Both the position numbers and the translations under genes were made by a program. A stretch of 55,724 nt of DNA from Octopus bimaculoides (lineage: Eukaryota): the NCBI RefSeq assembly GCF_001194135.2, contig NC_068986.1, positions 43,587,272 to 43,642,995 on the forward strand. The letters are read 5' to 3'. This document shows, piece by piece, positions 4,769 through 54,830 of the stretch; within the stretch, counting starts at the first letter, position 1, and each line of letters starts with the position of its first letter. A model generated the notes under the pieces. The model ran no database searches and had not been told where the DNA came from. It worked only from the letters and a program-made list of their open reading frames with translations.

Positions 4769-4929
4769 GCAAAAGAGGAATGTTTTTTGCATACATATAT
4801 ATATGCGTATATTATATTGTGTATATGTTTCTGAAATGGCATTAAAGAATCCCGATAAAATAGCATAGAACTGCAAATCGTATGCTACGGTTGTATGTTG
4901 CCAACGAGAATCCTTTTAACACGATGAAA

Positions 4930-5530
4930 TTAATTGTTGCTTACATAATGAAGGTTTATGTACCAATGTGGTTCACAATTAAACGCAACTCGTCCTCTGA
5001 AAATGAGACTAAATGTACTCAAGGCGATTGAGTCTTCGAGAGAAATGGATCAAGCGGTACAAGACATTGTATTTCCAGTTATACAACAACATGCTTTCTT
5101 TGTGCCCCCAGAAAATATTTTACTGGACTTAATAAACGATGAACGAAGCAACATTCGAGATCTAGCATGGAAACGCATAAAGCAGGCTCGAACACAGTAT
5201 AAAGGGAAATCTGTGCGACCTTTCAAAATTCCTACCCTAAACTTTGCTGCCTCAAACTACATAGACATGACTAACTGGCAGGACACTATTGTTACTGAAC
5301 CAACTCTAAAACAGGCATTTTCCCCATGAAGAAATTGATACCTTCATTCAACAGCGGCATTTGATGCAACTGGAAAAATTACTGTGCCACACCCAAGCTG
5401 TGGCGAGATGTGTAAAACTCGTGACAGAAGCATCATGTAATGTTTGTGGTGAAAACAGTCGAGACGGTTTCATTGGGAGTCGAATCGAATCAAGAGAAAA
5501 AATTCCGGTGTTCGAAGCAAAAATAAGGCC
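4930..5530 (+). pseudogene. hAT-related (hATm / 'cc8K15.2-like') transposase C-terminal relic
   Basis: ORF 4958-5329 (HAFFVPPENILLDLINDER...FKIPTLNFAASNYIDMTNW), then a frameshifted segment reading CHTQAV-RCVKLVTEASCNVCGENSRDGFI; the motif pattern is typical of this transposase group. The subgroup name is from memory. Confidence 0.7.
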
Positions 5531-6282
5531 TTCAGATTGAAAGGTAATACAGCAATAACCAATTAGAATTATTTCGTTTTAGCTATTTTGAACATAAGAA
5601 ACATTATGTCGTTTTAGGAATTTTCAAAACAACAAATTTTTGACTGTTCCATTCTTTATTTGAGAGTGAGATGCTAATTCATATCTACGAAAAAAAAACA
5701 ATTGGCTTTATTACTAGAACGAAAAAGAATGCACTACAACGAATCGTATTATTTAGTTACATGGAATTATTTTGAATAAATTGGAAATGTTAATTATTTT
5801 TATCACCAAAATGTGTCAAGAATCAAAAATTGGTTTACGCGCAATTTTATTTTAATGTGTGTGTAATCTAGACCTCATGTAATACATATATTCGGCGACC
5901 TAGTACCAAAATTAATAAAGAAGACAAAGCCGAAAAGTCTATTTATTTTACATAATTTCGAAATTTTAAGTACTTTGCAGAGTCTAAAGATATAACGCTT
6001 AGAGCATGAGATTTTAACACTCTTGTTTTAAAGAATTTTACAAAGGAAATTTGATTCATAATACTAAATATACAAAATAAAATGAGGAAAAGCAAATATG
6101 TTATAAATTGATTTTTCGCTCATTACTCAAAATTTAAAGTGGGCTGCGGAATCTGAAATGTAAGTTTAAGAACTTCAGATTTAAAACACAGTTGTTGTTA
6201 CATGATTTCGCAGTAAAAAATATATGCCTAAACACATACTTTGAAACTCTGTGTACAAAATGCCCTTTTCACTCCACGCTAA

Positions 6283-6915: not shown

Positions 6916-7190
6916 GGCGCAGGAGAGGCTGTGTGGTAAGAAGCTTGCTTCTCAACCACATGCTGTGTGAGTGTGTATTTGTGTGTCTGTATTTGTCCCA
7001 CCCCTCCACTTGACAACTGATGCTGGTGTGTTTACGTCCCCGTAACCTAGCGGTTCGGCAAATGGTCACGGACTGATAGAATAAATACTAGGCTTACAAA
7101 GAATAAGTCCTGCGGTCGATTTGTTCGACTAATGGTGGTGCTCCAGCACGACTACAGTCAAATGGCTGAAACAAGTAAAGAATAAAAGAA
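6916..7190 (+). mobile_element. SINE family A, head joined to tail by an internal deletion
   Basis: ggcgcaggagaggctgtgtggtaagaagcttgcttctcaaccacatg is fused directly to the tail cgtccccgtaacctagcggttcggcaaa...gctgaaacaagtaaagaataaaaga. Confidence 0.85.
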
Positions 7191-7955: not shown

Positions 7956-10720
7956 TTCTTAGGATTTCTACTTATTGCTTCTGAACTGTATTGCTACCAA
8001 CATCGTGCCAGGAAAAGCCATTAACGTATTATGCAATATGATAAACCGCTTGTGAGAAGTTTCTCATCTCACATTAATGAAATTAAAATATTTATTTGCA
8101 AAGAAAGAAATCTCATTAATTACCAATGACTTTCTTGATCTTAATGACATATATTCCATTTTAAAATATACTGAAATTTGTGGAGCTAAGAATTTTGATA
8201 TGCTTCAGGTAAATTTCATTATTCGTGTTTAATGATTCAATAAATATTTGGAACATCATATAATTTTAGACATGAAACTGTATATATGTCAGTGTCATAA
8301 ATTGTTCCAATCTAAAAAAAAATCAGATTGATCAAAAAGGTGTCAGCTACATCTTAATATGAAAAGAAAAATTGTGAACTTCATAGTAAGACAATATGAC
8401 CTTGTGTCATTTGGGCCAAAATAACTAAGGTAAAGAAATACTGAATCACTACCACCATATTCCATGTTTAAATTTCATAACTTCTTAAACAAACAATCAA
8501 AGAAACACATTTCATACAATTGTCATGTACTTTCTTTGTTCACTTAACAGATTAGTGCATGCAGATACATAGCTGATATAAACGCATGTAGGTGGTATGA
8601 ACAAATTACATAATAATAATAATAATTATTATTATTACTAAACAATAAGGAACAAATTATTATATAATTACTCACACTCTAAGGCAATGAAACATTCAGA
8701 AAGTGGATGATGTTCATGTTTCTTTAGACCCGTTTCTTTATGTGATCGCTACCCAAAGAAAATATATGAAATAATTTTGGAAAGATCGTAAACTTCAGTT
8801 TATGATCATATACTGAAGTCTTTATTTCGTGAACATATTTATTATAATTTTTAGTTTCATTATATTGAACACACCGACCAGTTTAATACTAGCCCCAGAC
8901 TCTAAAGTGTCATTAGCATAGATCAGCTTTACTAGAACTTATACAGATCCACTGTTGGAGAATAACACCTCTCTGCTGATATTTTCACTGAATTTTCCTT
9001 TATACGGAGTCATTCTTTGTCACCAGTTACAGATAGAAAAGATTTCTCAATGGAGAAATGTGGGTCTGCAGCAAATGTCTCGAGTGGATACTCTTTCAGG
9101 AGGCATATAATGTTTCTTCGGTTAGATACCTGTGCCCCTTCTTTTCAAGAACACTACAGAAAATCAAATACAACTGTCCATTTCACTCGACGATTTAAAT
9201 GTATCATATGAAATATACTAGTTCCAAAAAATAACTCTATTATATTCTAAGCACACAAAATACATAGTAAAGAAAAACACTATCCAGATTCTCGTAGCTA
9301 GCATATTTGGACTCAAAAAGAAAATAATTGTAACCTTCGAGAAATACTCCAGATTAGTCAGGGTCTAAACCTCTAACAGAGACTTGAATTTCTTCAAAAC
9401 AAACTCCAATAAAATACAAGAGCACACCTCGATGTACTTTGCATTATAATGGACCATCTACAAAATGAAATACAAAAGCTGAAAATGAGAAATCATCTGG
9501 ATATACAACGGTACAGTTTGTTGCTATAACAAACCTCAAACCTGATAGTCCACACCGTTATGTGCAAAATAGCTCCAAATACATGGGCTCATCTACATCA
9601 CTCCTAAAACACTAATCCCCTTTATTGGATGTCGATAAATATATTAAAAAATCACATCACAGTGAATAGCTGCAGCGTCAATATTCTCTTCATTGCCGAG
9701 CATTTCCCCACTATGCAGTAACAAAGCAGAGGAACGGCAAACACTGCACTCAAACGTTATTAATATTGATCGCTTATGATGTAGCTAGAGGCTGTACAGT
9801 GGAGTTAGCAGAACGTGTCCAGATTGCATAACTGTACCTGTACGATTAAACACTCACTGCATCTCGGAGTTACGTGGTATACTCACCAACCAAGTGGAGG
9901 TTTAATATGTCTGGAACAATAATTGGTGAATTGTAGCTTGTCGTTCGGTTAATTAATCATGAGCTTTTTACCGACTGCTCTGCCAGTGCTGGCTTGGGGT
10001 TATAAATATCTGTGATTAATACAATCTATTTATGACCCTCCGCAAAGCTCAAATGAAAACCATAGTGGAACACAGCTCCGGTATCCGTTACGATGCTATT
10101 TATATACACGAGCATGGAAGACTGCTTCCGAATGAAAGCCGGTCAATCGATTAGCCAAGATATACCCAGTAACATACATCAACTTCTAGCTCAGAGAAAA
10201 GCAATCTTCTCATTTTTGGCGTTACTTTTTTGGCGTTACTACGTCCCTTTTTTGGCGTTACTACGTCCCTTTTTTGGCGTTACTACGACAGTTTCTATTC
10301 CTTGGAAGTAGCTAGTTGTATTAAAACCCCACCGTAGTTCACTCGAGACACTCATCTCTTTTTTCATCACCCATAATATTTCCACCTACCTCGACATCTC
10401 TCGAGAATGTTAAGGATAGTTAAATTGAATATTAAACTGATTGTGTCCGAAGGCATGTGAATTGGGGGATGGGACGAATCTTCTTCATGATTAAACTATT
10501 TTAACGATACCCTATATAACAAGTAATCTTACCAAAATTGTGGAACAGTTTTATTATCTGAAACTATTTTCCTTAACAAATGGAATTTCTTCCCATTGCA
10601 TTTTAACATATTAGATAAGTGAAGTTTATATTTCTGAGATTTATTTAATGTTGACCACTGCAGCAGTTAGGTAGAACAGAAGTACACGTTCTATATTTAA
10701 GAGATGAAGGAGGAATTATG

Positions 10721-10912
10721 TACATTATTTACATTATTTACATTTGACAGATATTTGTCCCCATCTTGTTTGTTGTTAACACAACGTTTCGGCTGATATA
10801 CCCTCCAGCCTTCATCAGGACACCTGATGATGGCTGGAGAGTATATCAGCCGAAACGTTGTGTTAACAACAAACAATATAAGGAGAACTATCCGTCAAAT
10901 GTAAATAATGTA
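10721..10912. mobile_element. Fold-back (palindromic) Penelope-derived non-autonomous element
   Basis: Arms 10766-10819 and 10823-10876 are reverse complements (54 bp, 2 mismatches, 3-nt loop); pairing extends imperfectly to tacattatttacatttgac / gtcaaatgtaaataatgta. Confidence 0.85.
10819..10864 (+). ncRNA. Minimal type I hammerhead ribozyme motif (PLE type)
   Basis: Stem I GACAC/GTGTT; core CTGATGA (10824-10830) plus one extra nt; stem II GGCTG-10 nt-CAGCC; GAAAC; palindromic ACGT helix III; GUU cleavage triplet at 10857-10859. Confidence 0.8.
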
Positions 10913-12749
10913 AAGAAGTACACGTGTTCAAGACTGAAAATTACGTCAATCTAGCCGACAGCCTTCTTCCAGCCGAAGTAATCTTCTGAATCAAAGTTTT
11001 CGCCATACAGGTTGGAGCCAGAGGAAGAACAGGGCCAAAAGCCGTAAAGGCAACATCAGAGACAGCGGAGAAATGTTCCAGCTGGATCTGGTCGAAGAGG
11101 AACAAAAACTACCTTCTTACCGTTTGAAGTCAATGTGTTTGTTTTAATGCTAAGGGAAGTAACTCTGTGTGAGTCATTGTAATAGTGTTGACGTTTCCCC
11201 ACTACAATGACAACCAACGTTATTTCTTCTTGATATATAAGAATGAAAACTGAGTCAACTGAGAGGAGTAATAACTATATGAAATCTCCAGGTGGTTTAA
11301 ATGCACAAGTTTCTGATATCCAAGTGGCTAAAATGTCTCAGCAGAAAGGCATCCAGGAGCCATGACATAGATGTGTCCCGGTCCCCTTTGAGTGTAAGAA
11401 GTTAAGGGATGAAACACTTGCTAGAGAGGGGTTTCTTCAATGAAGACCTTCTGTTGTTCAGCTCTCTGTTGTTTTTAGTTCTCAAAGAACTTTTTTCCAA
11501 TAAATCCTGGTTAAGACAAGTTGATAAAAAGTAGCCCTTTTCTGTAAATTTATGTTGCTTTTGGTGTTTAGCCCTAAGTGAACCCTTATTGAAAAGACTC
11601 TTTTCTAGCAATGGCTAAACTGTTTTTTTTTATAAGGAACGGCTTAGTCTATATTGTGCTATCGAATGTGTCATTTTTGTAGACAGCATGGTGTAGTTAG
11701 AGTAACATCTAGTTGTTATTTGTAGAAAGTTGACAATCTATAGCTCCCTGATTGACTGGTATTCGTTTCAATAGTTGTAACGATGGATATTTACACAGCA
11801 TCCACCAAAGATGATAATTTTTAATATTTGAAATCACCTTATCTTGTAAGAAGAAAAAACAGAATTGCATCTGAATATGCTGTCATTCTTGTACATATGT
11901 ATTGAATTTGATCGTAACTGCTGAGGAGGAATAAAGACAGCTTTAAAGAGTGTTTTCTCTTTTCGGAGCCGTGACATGATGCAATAGAAATTTATGAAAA
12001 AAAAAATCACTTCTCGACAATTCATTGAACAGTAAAAGAAAATAAGCTACAAAATATGTAAAGCAGATGCATGAAGTAATTATGCTCTTTATTGATTTCC
12101 ACCTCCGGCATATGTGATTAGTTAACTAAAGTTGTTTTCGCTATGAAAGTAGTTGTGCGTTATATATTACTTAACTCATTCCATAGTATGCAGATGTCAA
12201 TCAAAAAGTTGTGCGTTCGATTGTAACTTAAAACTGCAGGATACTGTTTATTACTTTTAGCACAAAAGCGTAATTGCACATATCACCTTTAAAAAATGTG
12301 TTCATACAAATGCAAATTTCAAAGTTGCTTTGATGAAAAATGTATTGACGTACACGCACAGACATTCACGCATCTCCACATTCCTATATGTAGACATACG
12401 ACATATTCTAAGTATTGTTCAGAGACAAAACTCTTTAGATTAATAGCGAGTGGTGCATAAATATGTGTGTGGAGCGGAGGCACACACAATGCCAGGAGGA
12501 AGGTGTTACTTATGATTATAGCAGCTGACACCTCACATCTGGTTATTCGATATTTCTTACCCAGTCTGATAATCGGAAACGTGAAATTACATGTAAGGTG
12601 CCAGCTGTTCTAGTAATGCATACATACATACGTGCATCTATCCATCTATCCGTCCATCCATCCATCCATCCATCCATACATACATACATACATACATACA
12701 TACATACGATTGTATGAATGTATGTACAGTTTGTTGATAGTGGTGTACA

Positions 12750-13400
12750 GGTTTTATATATTAATAAAAGAAGGTAGTCAGAATTCGGATAGAATCTATT
12801 TATCGAGCGTTTTAATCCCCTTCAGAGATACAACAAGGAAACTTTTGAATTAATGAATCGCTGATTAAAAGTTGTTGTTGTTGTTGTTGTTGTTTTTTTT
12901 GTTTGTTTTTTTAATGAATTCAGTGTCTGAATAAAATATACCCTTATTTATCTTTTCATCGTAGTATATAGAAATTTTAAATAAAATATAATTTCTACTC
13001 CACCATAAATTCTTAACATATTATATAGACATTACTATATAATAAAAATGGGTAGTGATGATTTTAGATAAAAATATATTTAGATTGATATTATTAAAGA
13101 TGGATAAGAAAATTTTATAACCGTTGTAATTGTTTTGTTTGTTTATTTAAGTTATTCTATCTATTTGAATTTTGTTTTGTTTTTATTATATTTATTATAT
13201 TTTTAAATTATTAACACTTATGCTTGTAAACGTATGTATATTTTAAATCAATCCATTTTATGATTTAGTAGTCCTTGCATGAACATTTTGTCTATTTGTA
13301 GACAAATATTACCCTGACGAGACTCATATGCATAAATGTGAATTTTTATAAATTCACTAGTGGATATGAGTCGAAACAAATTATAGGAAATATATCTGTT
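12750..13400 (+). mobile_element. Penelope-like element 3' remnant (GIY-YIG C-terminus, AT-rich 3' UTR, hammerhead)
   Basis: Frameshifted FYILIKEGSQNS-RIESIY-ERFNP resembles the end of a GIY-YIG domain; it is followed about 470 bp later by a hammerhead core. Confidence 0.55.
13306..13393 (+). ncRNA. Partly degenerate type I hammerhead ribozyme motif
   Basis: Stem I ATATTACC/GGAAATAT (1 mismatch); CTGACGA at 13314-13320; perfect 9-bp stem II GACTCATAT/ATATGAGTC; GAAAC at 13373-13377; near-palindromic ACAAATTAT; AUA triplet. Confidence 0.7.
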
Positions 13401-15119
13401 TTAATTATTTGTTATATTATATTGTATTATATATTATCTCTTTTTATAGTATATTATATTATAATGTTGATAAATTTTTAATATCTGAATTGTATTTCTC
13501 TATTTCCTTTAATATTTATATATTGAAATTATACCATTTTAATTTCGGATCTTTTTCTCTACTATATCGTGGTATTTATCTGAAGTATCAATCAATCCTT
13601 GGATTNNNNNNNNNNNNNNNNNNNNNNNNNNNNNNNNNNNNNNNNNNNNNNNNNNNNNNNNNNNNNNNNNNNNNNNNNNNNNNNNNNNNNNNNNNNNNNN
13701 NNNNNNNNNNNNNNNNNNNNNNNNNNNNNNNNNNNNNNNNNNNNNNNNNNNNNNNNNNNNNNNNNNNNNNNNNNNNNNNNNNNNNNNNNNNNNNNNNNNN
13801 NNNNNNNNNNNNNNNNNNNNNNNNNNNNNNNNNNNNNNNNNNNNNNNNNNNNNNNNNNNNNNNNNNNNNNNNNNNNNNNNNNNNNNNNNNNNNNNNNNNN
13901 NNNNNNNNNNNNNNNNNNNNNNNNNNNNNNNNNNNNNNNNNNNNNNNNNNNNNNNNNNNNTACATATATGCGAGTGAGTGTACAAACGAAAGACTCAACA
14001 CATTTATTGAGAATTACAGGTATGCATCAAAACAGTTTGTATTTTCGAGCTGAGACAAGAAAGCGATTTGATCTGAATTTCAGCTCCAACCTTCTAGAAA
14101 AGACATTGTAGGCATTTGATGAAACACAAAGCTGTTGAATTCTCTTTTAATTAATATTTAGCTCATGAAATATCACAAGCATTTTTTGCACAAGCGTAAC
14201 CTGGTCACAAACAAAGCTACACTGCAACTGATTGAAAGTATGTTAATAGCCAGTTCTTGTAGGCCTAAGGTTCCCTTCTTTTTGTTTTATTTATAAATAT
14301 CGGTACATTTATTTATTTAATCCTTCTCATGTTTAAACAAATGCTTTCGTCGTATTCCTAGAAATGAAATTTGACCTCATGGCATCAATCACCAATCTAT
14401 CATCCTTAAATATTTTCTGTTCACAAATTAAGGTCATTAAATTTGAGCCAACGACATTTTCTCATTCATTTCATCATAGTTATTTATGCGTTCAATCTTA
14501 ATTTTATAACTAGCGTGATTCTGCTTGATGTGTCGAAAATGTAACATATATTAGAACAATTCTCCCTGTTGGTTTAAGTCTTAGAAATTAAGTTTCTGTT
14601 TTAATGCTTAAGATTGGGAATTTTAAAAAAACTGGGTCATGATGATGGTAATGGTCATTAATGGAAGGGTGAATGTTAACCATAACAAGAAAGTAATCTG
14701 GATAAACTTAAAAGCACCAATCGGTGAAAACTAGAAATGTTATTACACATAATACTATATACATATTATGTGTGTGTGTGTATACATGTATATATATATA
14801 TATATATATACATATATATCTATTACATATGTAAACATATATACACATACATATACACTATATACACATTTGGGTCAACCGAGTGAATTCCGATAATATG
14901 ACATTTCCAGGCGGTTTATACGTACTCGTACGTGCACAGAAACGCACACAGATGCACACACAGAGACACACACACACAAATACACACATATACACGCACA
15001 CACACACTCACACAAACATATATAGATATTAAAAATGGGGAAGGCCGGTTTATGGGATTACTTTATGCTTCCCGTCCATAAAGGGTTTAGCATTATGGCG
15101 TATCGTCAGATCCAAAAAC

Positions 15120-16022
15120 CTGTTGGCAAATGACCGCTTCAAAATATGGAGGGGGAAAATGCCTCACTACTCAAAGGTGACAATTGAGGATTATCTTTCT
15201 TTGCTATTGGTTGTCAACTTCCGGTTGTGCCACCATCTTGTCAACTCCAAAACGCTAGCAGGGACATCCTGAAATGTAAACATGGCCAGAGACGCTTCTT
15301 GAAAGAGTTCCCGGAATATCCAATGTATCTCCGTGAGCGTGTGCTGTCGGTGCTGTACCTGCTGGTGTTGCTGTTGCTGTTGTTTCTGCCACCGACATTG
15401 TTGTTGCTATTGTTGGAGCTGGGACTGCTGGTGCGGGCGTCGCTGCAGATGGTGGTGGCGTCGGTAACGGTATCGCAACTGCCGGTTATGGTGAAGGCAC
15501 TGTTGTTGTTATTGTTGCGGTTCTTGTCATTGGAGGGAGAACTGCCATTGCTGATAGATGTGCTAGACGTTCCGCTGGTGTTCCTGCTATGGCTACTGTC
15601 GCTGCTGGTACTGTTATTGCCGTTATAGCTGGCGATGACATTGGACCTGTTGCTGCTTTATAGGGGTTGTCAGGTCTCATAATGTGAACTTGAGGGAAGT
15701 TGTTGGTAATGCTGGTGTTGATGGCAATGCTGCTGTTCTTGTTAGTGTTGCTGCCGTCGGAAGAATTGCCAATTCTGTCGCTGGTGCCGTTATTACAATT
15801 GTTGCTAATGCTCTTAACTGTGGCGATGGTGGCGGTGTCACTGGATCTGTTCTCTTGTCTACGGCTGCTACTGATTCTGCCGCTGGTAATTCCAGGGTTT
15901 GCTAGTACTTCAGCATGTTAGACGACTCCTTTGATTTCACAGTGGCTTCCTACCGGGCATCTGTTGCGGTCCATGCATGAACAACTTCCCTCTTTCTGTG
16001 GCTTAGGGGCACTAACTAGGCT
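15120..16022 (-). mobile_element. Penelope-like element 3' part (inverted arm) with split GIY-YIG
   Basis: Minus strand reads CSCMDRNRCPVGSHCEIKGVV*HAEV, then a long N/S/T-rich tract, then RRYIGYSGNSFKKRL; both ends are homologous to 17179-17355 and 17385-17558. Confidence 0.8.
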
Positions 16023-16209
16023 GCTCTTAATATTGAAAATTGGCCCTGTTGAAAATTGGCCCGTACCTATGAGAGATAGTGAAATATTTATCTATTAATT
16101 TAAGGAATATCCTGCTTACAAGTTTTTTTACGTTAAGAGAGAAGATGGGGCAAAAGCCAAATGCTATTTCTACTGTTTTGAGATTCCGTCATGTAGGAGA
16201 TGCGTTCCC

Positions 16210-17558
16210 TAAATCTGAGAGAAATCCATAACGACATAAGGAGGGCCACCAATATTTCCCTGTGGCGCAACGCCAACGAAGCGACCGCATGGTTTAACAC
16301 CAACAAGCGAAGAGGCAGAGCAAGGTTCACCTAATTTGATACAGTCGGCTTTTACCCGTCTATATCAAAAGGACTGCTGACCAAGGCACTTTCTTTCGCT
16401 AGGGGCTTCACTAACATTAGAGACAGCGATGTAGAAGTTATTATACATACCAGAAAGACAGCGTTGTTCAACAAAGGTTCGGCATAGGTCAAGCAATTGG
16501 ACCCCACGGGCTCCTTTGACGCAGCTCTGGGTGCCAACGACAGCGCTGACGTATGCGACCTCATCGGGTTGTATATCCTAGACACCTTTAGGGAAAAGTT
16601 CCTTTCTATCCTCTATGGCCTCTACAAAGATGACGCCCTGGCCATTTCTAGAGGGGCAAGCGCACATACATAGGAAGGCTTAGGAAATATCTAATCAGCA
16701 TGCTTGCATCCATGGGATTGAAAATCACCATAGAGACCAACCTCATAACCGCGGACTTCTTAGACGTCGAGCTCGACTTGGGCTCCGGTACATACAGGCC
16801 CTACAGCAAACCGAACGAGAGGCTAACGTACATGAACACAGCCTCCTGCCACCCACCCATCGTGTTAGTAAGAGGATCACGAACCTTTCCTCCAACCAAG
16901 AGATTTTCGATGCAGCGGGCCCCGTACTTTTAACGCGGCCCTAGCTGCCAGCGGATTTCGGGACCGCATCTCCTACATGAACCGAACAACCGCAGAAGGA
17001 ATCACCGTAGAAATACCATTTGGTTCCCCCCCACACACACACACACACCTTCTCTCTTAACACATAGATATTCTTTAAATTAATAGATAAGCATTTCACT
17101 ACCTTCCATAGGTACGGGCCCATTTTCAACAAGCACAACGTTACAGTCTAGTTTAGCTGTACCCCCAATATTAAAAGCATCCTAGTTAGCGCCTCTAACC
17201 CACAGGAAAAAGCAGGTTGTTAATGCAGGGCCCGCAACAGATGCCCAGTAGGTCACTGCAAAACCAAAAGAGTCGACTATCAAGCCGAAGTACTAGCAAA
17301 ACCTGGCAATAACACCGGTAGAATCAGCAGCAGCCTTAGACAGGAGAACAGAGCCAGTAATATCCTTTAACTCTAGGACGGAGATTTTCGGGCCTTGTTT
17401 TCACTTCAGGAGATTCCTGATAACATTTTGGAGCCCACAAGATGGCGGCACAACCGGAAGTCCATAGCCAATAGCAAAGGAGATCATCCTCAATTGTTAC
17501 CTTTGAGTAGTGAGGCATTTCCCTCTCCATATTTTGAAGCAGTCATGAGCCAACAGAT
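16210..17558 (+). mobile_element. Penelope-like retroelement, disrupted RT plus N-terminal GIY-YIG
   Basis: Translates to FDTVGFYPSISKGLL, FDAALGANDSADVCDLIGLYIL, GLYKDDAL, LKITIETNLITADFLDVELDL...YRPYSKPN...SCHPP and C*CRARNRCPVGHCKTKRVDYQAEV; these are PLE-type RT and endonuclease motifs, with stops and frameshifts. Confidence 0.9.
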
Positions 17559-17559
17559 G

Positions 17560-17855
17560 TCTCCGGTACATCCTCTATCTGAAGTGGTCCGAAAGAGTGC
17601 CAAACACCGACCTGTGGGATCGGACACACATTGCAGAAAGAACAGTCAAATGAGACACGACAAGCACTTGACCGGAACCCGCAAGGGAAAAGGAAGCGAG
17701 GAACCCAGAAGCAGACATGGAAGTGGAGCATTTTGGACGAGCTCAGGTTCACCGGCCTGACATGGGAAGCAGCCAAGAAACACGCCAATGACAGCAAAAA
17801 GTGGAAAATAACTGTTGAGGCCCTATGCTCCACAAGGGGAAAAAAAGGGATTTAG
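17560..17855 (+). mobile_element. RTE-clade LINE 3' end
   Basis: IGHTLQKEQSNETRQALDRNPQGKRKRGTQKQTWK...GLTWEAAKKHANDSKKWKITVEALCSTRG matches the RTE C-terminal pattern; ends in (TA)n. Confidence 0.8.
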
Positions 17856-17950
17856 ATATATATATATATATATATATATANNNNNNNNNNNNNNNNNNNN
17901 NNNNNNNNNNNNNNNNNNNNNNNNNNNNNNNNNNNNNNNNNNNNNNNNNN

Positions 17951-19100
17951 AATAATGGAAGCATCTTAAAATTTCAAACAAATTTATTTTAATACATGCT
18001 AGGACCGCCTTTGGCCGTAATAACAGCATGAACTCTACGAGGTATGGACTCGTAGAAAGTTTGAATTGTCTCCAAAGGAATTTTTGTCTATTCTTCACCT
18101 AAAACAGTCTCTAGTTCTTGTGGTAATGATGGTGGAATATATCGACTCCTGCCTCGTTTTTCTGAAATGCACCATAAATGTTCAATAATATTGAGATGCA
18201 GGGACTGTAGTGGCCAGATAAGATGTTCAACTTCACTAGAATGTTCCTCGTGCCATTCAGTAACAACTTTAGCTGTGTGAATTGGTGCATTATCATCCTG
18301 AAATATTGCGTTTCCCTCTGGAAAAACTTCTGCAAATATAGGATGAATTTGATCAGATAAAATACTTAAATAGTATTGACTATTAATTCTGCCATGAAGG
18401 GAAACCATTTGGCCGGCGGATTTCCAAGATTTAGCACCCAAATCATCATAGATTCTCCTCCATGTTTAACAGTTGGAAGCCAGCTTCATTCGGCTGTCTC
18501 CATACGTATACTCGGCCGGTGGTGGGAAATAAGGTAAAGGATGACTAGTCCGAGAAAATAACATTCTTCCACTGCTCTAGGGACCAATTATGTAGGTTTT
18601 TACTCATTCCAAACGCTCAGCAACTTTTGTTTTTGAAAGTAGTGGTTTTCTGATTGCAACCCTCCCGTGAAATCCGACTTTGTGCATCTCCCAGCGAACA
18701 GTTTTTGTGGAAACTGGGTTCTCGAGGTGGTCATTAAGCTCTGGAGTAACTTCGGGACCTGTACTTTTGTGATTCTTTCTAGTAATTTGCGTAAAACTCC
18801 GACGGTCCCTATATGAAAATTTTGGTTTTCTTCAAGAGTTTTATTTCGACGAGGAGGTTTTTTCCCTCTTTCTCAAAGCTGTCATTACTTTCGAGACAGT
18901 ACTTCTTGATACACCAAACATTTCGGCGGTTTTCGTTACGCTAGCACTTGCCATACGAGCACCAACAATTTGGCCTATTTGAAAGTCCGATAGATCTGTC
19001 ATATTAATGAATTTTAATTCCCTTTTTCTGATGACATCTGAAAAGAAACAGCAATTTTAGCAAAACATGTTAAGCAACACTAATAATAAATCAACAAACA
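17951..19100 (-). mobile_element. Tc1-like transposon with DD36E spacing (Incomer-like), disrupted transposase at about 19002-17989
   Basis: N-terminus MTDLSDFQ-GQIVGARMASASVTKTAEMFGVSRSTVSKVM; catalytic FQDDNAPIH...WPLQSLHLNIIEHLW with 36 residues between D and E; C-terminus SIPRRVHAVITAKGGPSMY*. The 3' TIR falls in the gap. Confidence 0.9.
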
Positions 19101-19774: not shown

Positions 19775-21150
19775 GGGACAAGTATTCTTTGTATAGAATA
19801 CACTTCGCGGTGCTCAAGAGATTCGAACTTGAGGAGGTAAGCACAAGGAAGTTAGCTAAATCGATATAAAAAAAATATTAAGTACATTTAATACAAAAAT
19901 TGTACATATGTATACTTATAAAAGAGTCCGACTTACACAAAATGGAAATGATATCAGGAATTAAGGGGGCTGGGTAGGAGTTTTACGAGTCCAACAGCTG
20001 TTTCTTTGGGGTTGGTGGTCCAAATTAATGCTTGTAACTTGATTCCCTCATCGGATACCACCAGCCTCCATCTTCAGGGGAAAAATTTACATTTGAGGTG
20101 TTGATAGAATGGACATTAAAGACGGAATGATTTTGAAGGAAACTAAGTGTATTAGAAACAGGAGTTGGGGTGTTTAGACAGAGAGTAGTGGGAGGAGAAA
20201 ATAGATTTTAAGGTTAGGGTTGATAATGAGGCTAGTGATAGTAGTATAGGTGGGAGGAAGAGGGGAAAGGTGGTTTAGGTAGTATGTGAAAGATGATCTT
20301 TGTGTTAGATTGTATGAAGGTTATAAAATTAATGGTTGAGATAGATAAAGGGAAATAAGTTGACTGGTTCAGTAGCTGGAAGGTGAGGTTGTCAAAAGTA
20401 GTTGTTAGTGGGACAAAGAAATTGGATGGGTATTGGAGGGTATGGGGTGGGGTGTTGTGGTCAACGGAGGAGCATGGCATTGAATAGAGTGATGTGAGTA
20501 GGGAGGGGGTAGAGGTAGATTGGTTAGTTTTCAAAGGAGTTGGGTATTGTTAAGTACTTTTTGAGACCGGAGAGTGTGGGGAGGCTAAGAGGGAGGTGTG
20601 AAGTAGTTGATTTGAAAAAATTGGAAGAAATTGGAGATGTGTGTATGAGAGAGAGTAACAGGTCGGGTTAGTATTTTGTAAGTAGTAGGTTGCAAAGCTG
20701 ACTTTGTCTTGGTCTAAGGTTTCTTGGGCTATGGAAGCTTATTATGGGATTATATAGATTTGGCGAAGTGCGTAAAAAATTAGTAATATCTGTGTTTCCA
20801 AGAATAAATAATATTGGAGAATCTATTAAGTAATGAAGAGTTATGAAGGCGAAAAATGATTAATGATTCTTTTAGGCAGAATTTACACTTGCCGGTGTTT
20901 GCATTGTATGGGGGAGCTTCGTTACTATGCATCAGGATAGGGTGTATGGAATATTTGGGGATTTTAGGTTGTGTGTATACATTGCTAAGGAGGTTGACAA
21001 TTTAGTATTTGGATTGCTGAAAGAGTTCTTGTGTGCGCGGTAGCAGCGCTTGAAATCTACAGTGCCGCCGATATATATCTCTGCTTGGTGGGAGCGTAGT
21101 GATATAACACGGTCCTTGTAGATTAGATTTTGCATAGACGGAAGCCTCTA
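19775..21150 (-). mobile_element. Penelope-like element 3' fragment (canonical GIY-YIG, C/A-rich 3' UTR, hammerhead)
   Basis: LIYKDRVISLRSHQAEIYIGGTVDFKRCYRAHKNSF...YNANTGKCKFCLKE...LLNR; 5'-truncated; flanked by microsatellites. Confidence 0.85.
19989..20080 (-). ncRNA. Degenerate PLE-type hammerhead ribozyme motif
   Basis: Minus strand: CCC-CTGAAGA, stem II TGGAGGCTGGTGGT...ACCACCAACCCCA, then AA-GAAAC-AGCT-GTT-GG; palindromic helix III ACAGCTGT; stem I is only about 2 bp. Confidence 0.6.
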
Positions 21151-36670: not shown

Positions 36671-36799
36671 GTATAAATTTAAATCACAATATATAGTCAA
36701 CTAATCTGGTGGTACTCATAAAAGTTCTTTAATGTATCATTCTACAAAGCACATATAGAATTTATTGTACGATACAAAAGAAAAGCATAAGGGATGTAA

Positions 36800-36896
36800 A
36801 AAATTATAAATAACGGGAGAAATATACAATGATAAAATTTATTTTTCCATTGAAGTAAATTTTATCATAGTATATTTCTCCCGTTATTTATAATTT

Positions 36897-36897
<1 letters not shown>
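36800..36897. repeat. Near-perfect hairpin: 42-bp arms, 1 mismatch, 14-nt loop
   Basis: Arms 36800-36841 and 36856-36897. Confidence 0.95.
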
Positions 36898-36935
<38 letters not shown>

Positions 36936-36940
36936 GAAAT

Positions 36941-37570
36941 ACGATGAATGTAAACAAACAAAAGAAGCGTTGAGATGTCTTAGAAAGTTAAAGAAGTAAT
37001 TTTTTTTTAATTCTCAAATGCAGGATAATGCTAATATAGTATGTACAGGATAAACTACTCCGATTTTGCAGAAAAAAGTGGTGGCGGCCAGCCATGAGAC
37101 TCGAACTCACACCCCTATGATTAAGCGTCGCAGTGCTCTGCATTGAAGCTAAGCTGCTCCCACAACATTTTTTTTTCTGTAAAATCGGAGTAGTTTATCC
37201 TGTTCATGCTATATTATTAGCATTATTCTGTGTGTGAGAATTAGAAAAATTATTTCTTTAACTTTCTACGACATCTCAACGCTTCTTTGTTTGTTTACAT
37301 TCATCGTTATTTGAATTTAACGTACGATAGCGTCTCATAAAGCTTGATTTATATATCTTAAATATGGAGAACAGATTTCTGGGGAGGCAGCTTAGCTGAA
37401 AAGGTAGAGCATTGCGACGAATAATCAGAGGAGTGTGAGTTCGAGTCTCATGGCTGGCCGTCAACACTTTTTCTGCAAAATCGGAGTAGTTTATCCTGTT
37501 CATGATATATTATTAGCATTATCCTGCGTTTGAGAATTAGAAAAATTACTTCTTTAACTTTCTAATACAT
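36941..37570. mobile_element. Composite fold-back element with two tRNA-derived heads and three copies of a 100-140-bp tail
   Basis: Tail (reverse) 36941-37077; head (reverse) 37078-37161; tail (forward) about 37170-37307; spacer; head (forward) 37381-37467; tail (forward) 37468-37570. Confidence 0.9.
37381..37460 (+). pseudogene. tRNA-derived (Lys/Ile-like) Pol III head; not a functional tRNA
   Basis: A-box-like TAGCTGAAAAGGTAGAGC and B-box GAGTTCGAGTC; acceptor and anticodon stems do not pair cleanly; an inverted copy lies at 37078-37161. Confidence 0.75.
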
Positions 37571-37586
37571 ATATATAATATATACT

Positions 37587-37626
<40 letters not shown>

Positions 37627-38333
37627 CTTGTAAATATTTGCATACATGGTATTTACTATATGTTCATATTTCAATACTCATTTTAGGATTATAATTTAAC
37701 TTTTAGGATTATAATTTAACAATCAAAATCATTTATTTTATTGAACAAAAGAAAGATTATATTTCAATTCTTTAACGTTTAATATTCGTATGAAATATTG
37801 TTAACTCAGATTACAGCAAACAATAGCAAAAATCTCGCCAAGATATAAGAAGCTTACAAAAAACTGGATGTCTTCATTATATACAGAGTATCATAAAGAA
37901 GAATGGAGAATTATGCATCTTCAAAAACTCATTTATTATAGTATTTTTCTCATTAAATTCGCGTTAAATCTCAGTCTCACACCTGCGTTGCTGCATAATT
38001 CTCTTAATACCTTTTGATACCGCCTTTATGTGCATTTAGTTGATTCATTTATAGTACATATTCACCCAGAGTAGACATTTCTACGCATCTTTGCTCAAGG
38101 TTTTATCCAAGTAGCTGGATGACGCGAACTGAAGAATTCAGCTTTAGACAGTTCTTATTTTCGAGTATTTTCGAGGTGAGGGAATCATAAAGTCTTAGTA
38201 TAAATCATAATAAAGATTACTTTGAAAAACGATATGACTATAGTTTTCTCATCATTTAAACTTAGAATTGCCTTTTAGAATCTAAAGGAATAGATTATGT
38301 TTTTACATACACTATGTTTTCTTTTATTACACA

Positions 38334-48488: not shown

Positions 48489-48640
48489 AGAGGCTTCTTT
48501 CAGTTTCCGTCTACCAAATCCACTCACAAGGCTTTGGTCGGCCCGAGGCTATAGTAGAAGACACTTTCCCAAGGTTTCACGCAGTGAGACTGAAACTGGA
48601 ACCATGTGGTTGGCAAGAAAGCTTCTTACCACACAGCCAC
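48489..48640 (-). mobile_element. SINE family A 5' half
   Basis: Reverse complement of the head (gcttcttaccacacagccac) and body (ccactcacaaggctttggtcggcccgaggctatagtagaagacac). Confidence 0.9.
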
Positions 48641-48744
48641 TTTTGTATTTTGTATGTATATGTTTATAATATTGTATCATAGTATCAACCAGACTATCGG
48701 GTGCAGTTATACACTACTGGTCATACGCTAACACAATTCCTGAA

Positions 48745-54099: not shown

Positions 54100-54830
54100 T
54101 AACTACTTAGATTACATTCATAGATGATTTTAATGGTCGAAATGTCTTGGAATATCATCTGCAAAAACTGCCTTTCTCTCCTACTTCAATTAATCTATGG
54201 TAGATTTTCATTGCCATTCAAACATTGGTAGAATTCATAAACGAATATTTGTATCTGTTAATTTGTCGAGTGTTAGAAAAAAATTAGGTTGATATATGAA
54301 AAGTACAGAAAGTTATATACTAAACCAGTCTCACTTAATATATTAGTTTACATTTAGTTACATAGATTAATAGCAGGCATTCCAAGAGCCGATATTCCAT
54401 AAATCAGCAATTTGTAATATTAATCTTATTAACGTTAATCTTATTGAGAGAATTTATATACTTTGTGTTAGCGTTGAACCTTTCTTCTCTGTCAACTTTT
54501 CAAGTACGGAACGACTTGTCAGGTGACAGATTGGAGATGTGTTTGCTGATAATGTTAGTCATATGTTTACAATATGTAGGTAGAGGGTTGGAGAATTTAT
54601 TAATGCATAGTTTTTTTCGTTCGGTGTATCGAATGGAAAGTGGTATGCGCTTGTTTAGATTTAATGTTATATCTAAAACGTTTACTATTTTCATGATAAT
54701 ATTCATCTTAAATTGTTATATCCTTCTCAACTATGTATTCTCGGTGACCCTGTTAGAGCCATCGTGTATAAAAACTCATCAAGTTTTTTACCAAGCACAG
54801 ACTATCCATCTTATGAGTTTCCATCAGCAG
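54100..54830 (-). mobile_element. Penelope-like RT C-terminal/linker fragment
   Basis: MNIIMKIVNVLDITLNLNKR...CINKFSNPLPTYCKHMTNIISKHISNLS follows the PLE pattern (N.K.VN.LD.TL.L...YI...SNHP...I..RIS.LS). Confidence 0.7.

Follow-up and report, generated by a model that had tools for sequence, protein, structure and literature searches.

A tRNA-Lys-like repeat complex in Octopus bimaculoides with the architecture of a Penelope-like insertion: suggestive evidence from a single locus

A 634-bp complex at positions 36937-37570 of the Octopus bimaculoides DNA studied here contains three copies of a ~100-nt tail that are 88-92% identical, and two copies of a tRNA-like head that are 85% identical, arranged on the plus strand in the order inverted tail-head, tail, unique spacer, head, tail. 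Throughout the text, 'the window' refers to the whole stretch of DNA that was analysed, which is 55,724 nt long. The most economical explanation of the structure is a single insertion of the type made by Penelope-like elements (PLEs), for which the evidence is suggestive, not proven. In particular, we hold it possible, rather than probable, that a short non-autonomous retroelement with a unit of ~296 nt was inserted here in one PLE-type event, in which case the tail-core would be the pseudo-LTR and a tRNA-Lys-like module would be the cargo. All conclusions about this element are drawn from one locus.

The repeat structure was established by blastn of the individual parts against the window and by a repeat scan. 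Tails A and B were 88% identical (E 3e-45), tails B and C 92% (E 2e-39) and tails A and C 89.5% (E 5e-35), while heads A and C were 85% identical (E 1e-21). These E-values are far beyond chance, and they confirm what the original prediction had read from the sequence, namely a tail that occurs three times and a head that occurs twice, in inverted plus direct order. The repeat scan returned a direct repeat of 37172-37274 and 37468-37570 with a period of 296 nt, together with the inverted pairs. Since the copies diverge by 8-15%, a trivial duplication in the assembly is ruled out. The substitutions unique to one tail copy numbered 4, 6 and 2 in ~100 nt, and these counts appear compatible with a single age of the three copies.

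On the left, the complex is preceded by a (TA)17 microsatellite (36899-36932, no strand), either the target array or the 3' simple-repeat tail of copy A, from which it is separated by an 8-nt link. Copy A lies on the minus strand and begins with its outer 3' end, a 38-nt extension (36937-36974), followed by tail-core A (36975-37071), a candidate pseudo-LTR that is bounded by TG..CA on the opposite strand. Between tail A and head A there is a T6 run (37072-37077; A6 on the plus strand), and head A itself (37078-37167) comprises a tRNA-Lys(CTT)-like cloverleaf at 37082-37159 with a GCCA end, plus a short leader and trailer. A T9 run (37168-37176, plus strand) marks the inverted junction between A and B, and all further parts of the complex are likewise on the plus strand. 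These are tail-core B (37177-37274), which is the upstream direct copy without a head and a candidate 5' pseudo-LTR; the 38-nt extension that follows it (37275-37312); the unique spacer (37313-37375), which has no second copy in the window; head C (37376-37467), with a tRNA-like cloverleaf at 37386-37459; a T5 run (37468-37472) between head C and tail C; and tail-core C (37473-37570), which ends in ...ACAT without the extension and passes straight into a TA-rich stretch (37571-37622, no strand) that includes (TA)14 at 37595-37622. The extension of copy A is 95% identical to 37271-37312, and the 38 nt are thus common to A and B but absent after C. The spacer had been predicted to measure 73 bp; a unique spacer does exist, although its length is 63-73 nt, depending on the tail end chosen. 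Copy A abuts copy B with only an overlap of T-run and CAACA between them, and this CAACA (37163-37167), which can be taken either as leader A in reverse complement or as the trailer of a head, constitutes a 5-nt microhomology at the inverted A/B junction.

The tRNA-like nature of the heads became visible only at relaxed thresholds. By default, ARAGORN found no tRNA in the window, and no Rfam family reached its gathering score there; the Rfam tRNA model assigned 24.3 bits to 37386-37459, the gathering score being 29. When ARAGORN was run at a 90% threshold, exactly two cloverleaves were found in the whole window, and these were the two heads, c37082-37159 being of the Lys (CTT) type and 37386-37459 having its anticodon position mutated to AAT. 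By direct reading, both heads have a good B box (GAGTTCGAGTC), whereas the A box of head C is fair and that of head A poor. Overall, the proposal of a tRNA-derived head with A and B boxes is upheld by the two cloverleaves and the good B boxes, with the exception of the degenerate A box in head A. Since the same stem mismatches are found in both heads, their common ancestor was already a pseudo-tRNA. The terminus of head A reads ...GGCCGCCA, i.e., it is CCA-like. In eukaryotic tRNA genes, the CCA end is not encoded. The CCA-like end of head A, as far as the sequence can tell, hints at a retro-copied mature tRNA, and template jumping onto a mature tRNA may be how the element acquired its tRNA-like module.

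The heads are directly followed by runs of T, which bears on the question of transcription. A T-run is found 7 nt after the tRNA-like part in every copy, namely T6 in A, T9 in B and T5 in C, and the extension of copy A also holds TTTT. A T-run of such position and length is the expected terminator of Pol III, and head-initiated transcripts are therefore expected to be ~95 nt long and to lack the tail, because T5-T9 come directly after the head. The abundant octopus SINE in the window has no TTTT on its sense strand. A reading of the element as a Pol III-driven SINE appears unlikely on these grounds, and this part of the original prediction, in which Pol III was to drive the element, is not supported, since the T5-T9 runs directly behind the head in A, B and C should end the transcripts before the tail.

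Relatives of the element were sought at several levels. No further copies were found in the 55.7-kb window, either by blastn at word size 7 or by nhmmer with the --max option, and nhmmer profiles of head and tail found none in 20.5 kb of O. vulgaris DNA. This O. vulgaris locus and the window have many interspersed repeats in common, at 75-91% identity, which identifies the window as octopod DNA. Searches with an exact 23-mer from the tail and an exact 21-mer from the head produced zero matches in metagenome, viral and prokaryote-genome collections, and sequence strings of the element were not found in a full-text literature search. Only short ORFs overlap the locus, and a 75-aa ORF across the element had no relative among 5.8 billion proteins. 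Lastly, three long ENA contigs with PLE homologues had no repeats in common with the window.

The layout of the complex was then compared with known PLE insertions. In a typical insert of an EN+ PLE, a full copy comes after a direct copy that is 5'-truncated and forms the pseudo-LTR (pLTR), and there is often an inverted 5'-truncated copy immediately at the 5' side (PMC8557442, Craig et al. 2021; PMC3846280, Arkhipova et al. 2013). The inserts may additionally have an optional 'tail' of 30-40 bp, found at one end only, which is the sequence that comes after the upstream pLTR (PMC11167929; PMC3846280), and their junctions show microhomology or palindromes (PMC8557442; PMC3846280). The octopus locus maps onto these published inserts, with A as the inverted copy with its extension, B as the upstream pLTR and C as the downstream pLTR. 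First of all, the partial tandem feature is present, in the form of tail-core B, then extension, spacer and head C, and finally tail-core C, with a period of 296 nt and 92% identity. The inverted 5'-truncated copy is likewise present at the 5' side, as copy A (36937-37167, minus strand), and so is the one-sided extension, since the 38 nt lie at the outer end of A and after B but not after C. It is to be noted that the extension could also be missing from copy C through a later deletion next to the microsatellite. The original prediction had proposed a PLE-mobilised layout; its architecture holds, and has gained the one-sided extension and the junction microhomology, while mobilisation by a PLE is itself inferred from one locus. 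We consider this reading of the architecture to be strengthened by the 38-bp extension, by the microhomology, by the lack of target site duplications (TSDs) around monomers, and by the PLE relics in the window.

The biochemistry of PLEs suggests how such a structure could arise in one event. A PLE protein, when purified, was shown to nick both strands of the DNA and to extend both (Frangieh et al. 2024, PMC11167929), and the PLE reverse transcriptase starts at two internal sites of the RNA, the 'tail' being the stretch between them (PMC11167929). Furthermore, pLTRs by themselves are able to transport unrelated cargo in trans (PMC3846280). By analogy, the enzyme in the octopus would be a PLE reverse transcriptase/GIY-YIG endonuclease, and the template would be the transcript of a tandem donor of the form ...head/T-run/tail-core/ext/spacer/head/tail-core/ext.... 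Both strands of a TA-rich site would be nicked and both extended. On one strand, reverse transcription from the distal start site would yield copy A in inverted orientation, its outermost part being the 38-nt extension. On the other strand, synthesis from the proximal start site would yield tail-core C without the extension, and would continue back through head C, the spacer and the extension into tail-core B, such that this cDNA would be 1.36 units long. The two cDNAs would then be joined at the CAACA/T-run microhomology. In these terms, the ~100-nt tail-core would be the pseudo-LTR and the 38 nt would be the PLE 'tail'. Because T5-T9 should stop Pol III, the tRNA-Lys-like module with its encoded CCA-like end would be an internal cargo rather than the promoter of the template, and transcription of the template would more likely start from an upstream pseudo-LTR or come from read-through.

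PLE sequences are indeed found in the same window. By tblastn with four relatives as queries, PLE-like coding stretches were located at 15120-17556, at 20759-21135 (minus strand) and at 54434-54694 (minus strand). For the ORF at 16652-16930 there are about 1,750 relatives, of which the full-length ones contain a reverse transcriptase followed by a C-terminal GIY-YIG-like domain, and carry RWK, DKT and CxCx5C motifs. These motifs define the Hydra clade (PMC8557442), the members of which, like Naiad PLEs, have (TA)n as their insertion site (PMC8557442). On the basis of motifs read by eye against PMC8557442, the relic at 16.5 kb appears to group with the Hydra clade, which targets (TA)n; for the PLE homologues, neither Pfam nor PDB sequence searches were informative. 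In the relic at 15120-17556, the direct copy is 5'-truncated and its 3' ~490 bp are repeated in inverted orientation directly at the 5' side; the studied locus shows this head-to-head layout as well. At 10725-10917 there is a fourth relic, a palindrome in which both of the 95-nt arms contain a hammerhead core. Since the relics include the inverted-copy layout, PLE enzymes have been active in this genome and have left such structures.

A direct sequence link between the element and these relics was not detected. Neither the tail nor the whole unit, when compared with the three coding PLE relics of the window, scored better than shuffled sequences, so that the expectation that the tail might match the pLTR of an autonomous PLE found no support among them. 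The tail had also been described as lacking a recognisable hammerhead, and this agrees with the present results: Rfam at E<=10 detected no hammerhead in 36800-37700, and no CTGANGA...GAAA core was found in the locus. The Rfam result is a weak negative, because Rfam also missed the obvious cores at 10.8 kb. Hammerheads in the pLTR are found in the canonical clades and in Hydra but are absent in Naiad and Chlamys, and are therefore not universal to PLEs (PMC8557442). Other ribozymes were likewise not detected in the locus by Rfam at E<=10, and the degree of structure in the tail RNA is not out of the ordinary (z = -1.07).

Both ends of the complex lie at most 40 bp from (TA)n arrays, which is true of 0.09% of random 630-bp segments. 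Scanning for TSDs around units A, A+B, B, C, and spacer+C returned none; similar TA-type flanks were found only around the whole complex. However, the flanking (TA)n is ambiguous, because the abundant SINE and the RTE-like LINE of the window end likewise. The abundant octopus SINE ends in TA/TG repeats, both in the window and in O. vulgaris, and the end of the RTE-like LINE ORF (17583-17852) runs directly into (TA)n. Sequence of the (TA)n type follows copies A and C but not copy B, and it could represent SINE-type 3' tails of these two copies.

This ambiguity leads to the alternative that fares best, in which the complex derives from an ordinary LINE-mobilised tRNA SINE composed of head, tail, extension and (TA)n, which either hit one TA microsatellite several times or underwent one aberrant TPRT event, such as template switching, snap-back or a twin-priming-like process. 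In its favor, copies A and C are followed, in the sense orientation, by TA-rich repeats, just as the abundant SINE of the window and of O. vulgaris and the RTE-like LINE end in repeats of this kind, and short tandem repeats are a common 3' end of mollusc SINEs (PMC4758252). The locus resembles the cephalopod tRNA SINEs (squid SK; octopus OK, OR1 and OR2; Ceph-SINEs; CORE-SINEs) in its tRNA-Lys-like head with a CCA-like end, in the unrelated tail after the head, the complement of which ends in CA, in its octopod host, and in the TA-rich repeats on its 3' side; it differs from them in the T5-T9 runs after the head, in having no monomer TSD, and in its inverted and partial-tandem layout. The comparison with OK, OR1 and OR2 was one of described features. 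Indeed, tRNA-Lys-derived SINEs with an encoded CCA are reportedly a classic theme in cephalopods, as Ohshima et al. are said to have described in 1993 and 1994, and this also counts for the SINE origin. A link to CORE-SINEs was considered separately, as the start of the tail resembles 'TCTGTAAAATGGGG...TGTGAGGATTAAA' of MIR, but with the approximate MIR sequence used for the comparison the resemblance was not significant (z <=1.75).

Several features nonetheless make the SINE origin unlikely. Transcription of the entire unit by Pol III is incompatible with the T5-T9 runs after the head and with the TTTT of the extension. Besides the missing monomer TSD, copy B has no (TA)n tail. Beyond the (TA)n, the element has no 3' sequence in common with either the abundant SINE or the RTE-like LINE end, in agreement with the earlier statement that the tail has no recognisable LINE 3' end. 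Independent insertions are improbable because three copies fall within 630 bp and the family is otherwise absent from 76 kb of octopus DNA. As regards a single aberrant event, L1 twin priming works from one RNA, and the 3' region as a whole is not duplicated by it. The locus is like the products of L1 twin priming and like LINE template-switch chimeras in having an inverted 5' segment beside a direct 3' segment, joined at microhomology, but unlike twin priming, which gives no duplicate of the whole tail, it has the full tail in both orientations and a third tail in tandem.

A local rearrangement, in contrast to any transposition of the complex, is distinctly unlikely in our view. Here, a tRNA-Lys pseudogene or a single old SINE, along with its flank, would have been duplicated in tandem and inverted at a fragile palindromic (TA)n, by template switching during replication or by fold-back repair. 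That only one locus is known speaks for such an origin, as do the (TA)n and an unrelated 110-bp hairpin (36794-36903) directly alongside, and the T-run is located where the terminator of a tRNA gene would be. The period of 296 nt also falls within the range of tRNA gene arrays. Against this, the stem mismatches that the two heads share mean that a pseudo-tRNA was already the ancestor, and the CCA-like end, being encoded, suggests an RNA that was retro-copied. In addition, the outer boundaries of the complex coincide with microsatellites, and several steps at the DNA level would be needed where one PLE-type event suffices.

The paired direct repeats invite yet another comparison, as they have TG..CA termini in either orientation. 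Accordingly, the complex could be viewed as a miniature LTR retrotransposon (TRIM) on the minus strand, with the order LTR (tail-core, 96 nt), tRNA-Lys complement, spacer plus extension (purine-rich before the 3' LTR) and LTR, in which copy A would be a rearranged fragment of either a tandem or a 1-LTR-circle form. Such an element would be loosely akin to Helenus, or to what the 'strong-stop DNA' origin envisages for tRNA-Lys SINEs, which Ohshima et al. reportedly proposed in 1993 for those of cephalopods. On the minus strand, all three tail-cores are of the TG..CA type (TGTCTTAG...TTTTGCA), the tRNA complement of copy A begins with TGGTGGCGGCCAGCC, including the CCA complement, 8-11 nt past the LTR end, and AAACAAACAAAGAAG is found upstream of the 3' LTR, no more than 10 nt away. 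The start of the minus-strand tRNA complement, which can also be given as TGGTGGCGGCC, is where a primer-binding site (PBS) would lie, and is decayed in copy C. The total size of ~395 bp and the LTR size are both in the range of TRIM/Helenus elements (PMC10886601). However, there is no TSD of 4-6 bp around 37178-37569 (TTTTC vs TATAT), the gap between the LTR and the TGG is long, and the complement of a whole tRNA at the PBS is not a described feature. Moreover, copy A, which comprises the extension, the LTR and the PBS side, is inverted and abuts the 3' LTR, and would need extra events.

The opposite orientation is the one in which Helenus itself would be compared. Helenus (TRIMp3) elements are miniature LTR retrotransposons whose LTR contains a tRNA-like sequence (Kojima 2024, PMC10886601), and in molluscs they are found in bivalves only (PMC10886601). 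On the plus strand, LTRs composed of head and tail-core would have the ends TGGGGAGG...AATACA, with the upstream LTR lacking its head. The locus is thus like Helenus in being short and non-autonomous, in having direct repeats with a tRNA-like sequence inside or next to them, in its TG..CA ends, and in a size within range. It is unlike Helenus in having neither a canonical PBS nor a polypurine tract (PPT) in the Helenus orientation, there being no TGG-type PBS within the extension or spacer start and the candidate PPT site, AACAGATTTC, not being purine-rich; it also has no TSD, and has an inverted third copy. In the opposite orientation it differs as well, for there the tRNA-like part is a primer complement and lies outside the LTR. 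The TRIM reading on the minus strand has partial support. Neither LTR orientation explains copy A or the missing TSD, and we regard a TRIM as very unlikely.

Lastly, a foldback or MITE-type DNA transposon, with A and B as 140-nt TIRs around a 94-nt tRNA-like loop and C as a partial second copy, is scarcely credible: although 36937-37312 does form one long hairpin (DNA MFE -128 kcal/mol, z = -25), so that the arms named in the original prediction as those of a possible MITE with a fixed TSD are present, no TSD of any usual length flanks this hairpin, copy C needs a separate event, and the mariner/Tc1 transposase fragments of the window show no link to it.

Returning to the PLE-type insertion, it is to be noted that short derivatives of EN+ PLEs are already known, namely the pLTR-bounded captured sequences of Adineta vaga, MRC1/Chlamys in Chlamydomonas, the short non-autonomous Penelope of Heliconius, and the non-LTR retrozymes of animals. 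The octopus locus is like them in its inverted copy, pseudo-LTR, one-sided extension and junction microhomology, and may be like them in an AT-rich/(TA)n insertion site. It is unlike those in the literature searched in that it carries a tRNA-like module, and also differs in having no detected hammerhead, no sequence link to an autonomous PLE, and a single locus. A literature search turned up no tRNA-carrying PLE derivative, and such a derivative, in contrast to a short non-autonomous PLE as such, would be new if confirmed. As a broader and more doubtful proposition, octopods may harbour a tRNA-Lys-bearing non-autonomous family that is copied by a PLE reverse transcriptase, possibly one of the (TA)n-targeting Hydra clade.

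Passengers that derive from small RNAs are known for LINEs, in the form of SINEs, and since 2024 for LTR elements, in the form of Helenus, Ajax and Cassandra; for PLEs, no such passenger is known to have been described. If the PLE-type reading is true, the octopus element would be the first small-RNA-derived passenger of the third class of retrotransposons, and thus the PLE counterpart of SINEs and Helenus. The mechanism of PLE transposition is still being worked out, and an element of 300 nt with the full PLE insertion signature, i.e., priming on both strands, two start sites of reverse transcription and template jumps, would offer a compact natural substrate for studying it. It would also mean that the tRNA-like repeats of cephalopods are not all LINE-dependent SINEs, which bears on repeat annotation and on the prediction of tRNA genes. 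Should the locus be a one-off rearrangement, it would be an ordinary decayed repeat cluster.

As for the surroundings of the locus, the window is draft-quality eukaryotic assembly sequence with a G+C content of 33% and contains twelve N gaps along with fragments of mariner/Tc1 elements and LINEs, and one of its ORFs matches a hypothetical protein of Octopus vulgaris.

Coding relics of Penelope-like elements (PLEs) were found at three places in the 55.7 kb, with a hammerhead-bearing palindrome (10725-10917) in addition. One, at 15120-17556, is a relic of the Hydra clade, a PLE clade that targets (TA)n; its direct copy is 5'-truncated and runs from the reverse transcriptase (RT) to the endonuclease (EN) at 16215-17434 on the plus strand, and 15120-16155 constitutes an inverted copy of the 3' ~490 bp of this direct copy. 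Inside the inverted arm lies a low-complexity, CTG/GTT-rich insert of 530 bp (15310-15840), which carries a minus-strand ORF rich in N, S and T. The other two relics were PLE protein matches by tblastn, both on the minus strand, corresponding to the C-terminal part of the EN (20759-21135) and the thumb region of the RT (54434-54694).

The palindrome itself is near-perfect, consisting of two 95-nt arms that are 91% complementary and separated by a 3-nt gap, and both arms carry a hammerhead-type core, CTGATGA-[GGCTGG...CAGCC]-GAAA. Rfam made no hammerhead call on this palindrome and returned only a weak match to a miRNA model. In appearance it resembles two PLE pseudo-LTRs set head to head; such pseudo-LTRs arise where a 5'-truncated direct copy precedes a full PLE copy.

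At 17583-17880, a reading frame resembling LINE ORF2 (...TWKWSILDELRFTGLTWEAAKKHANDSKKWKITVEALC...), which on visual inspection is RTE-like, comes to its end and is directly followed by (TA)n and then by an assembly gap; this order suggests that the genome has a LINE whose 3' tail is (TA)n. A 110-bp hairpin at 36794-36903, with 51-nt arms of 92% complementarity and an 8-nt loop, sits immediately left of the (TA)17 flanking the complex of tRNA-Lys-like heads and tails (36937-37570). The hairpin occurs only once within the window and scored 45 bits against the mir-2363 model, far under that model's gathering score of 90; possible identities are a small MITE and a miRNA-like hairpin.

The abundant octopus SINE is tRNA-derived and CORE-like, about 150 nt long, with copies 85-94% identical to the consensus and no TTTT in its sense strand. 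Copies were found in the window at 131-272, 2778-2890 and 48492-48641 (minus strand), with fragments at 6924, 7818 and 31748, and TA/TG microsatellites continue from the 3' ends. In a 20.5-kb Octopus vulgaris locus sharing interspersed repeats with the window (L002), at least four copies were present in 20 kb, lying at 11650-19016, with three of them spaced about 1 kb. Also common to the two species is a repeat at 4825-6138 with two consecutive ORFs, the first at 4958-5329 and the second downstream; it matches L002 9988-11213 at 80% nucleotide identity, where the O. vulgaris annotation reads 'hypothetical predicted protein', and Pfam returned zero domain matches for it.

Twelve N gaps are distributed over the window, most of them within or beside TA/TG/CA microsatellites and several adjoining repeat ends, so that, where a repeat ends at a gap of this assembly, its boundary calls for caution. 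Small tandem repeats were also seen, namely three copies of a 22-bp unit (CGTCCCTTTTTTGGCGTTACTA) at 10220-10294 and an exact 20-bp duplication (TTTTAGGATTATAATTTAAC, two copies) at 37681-37720.
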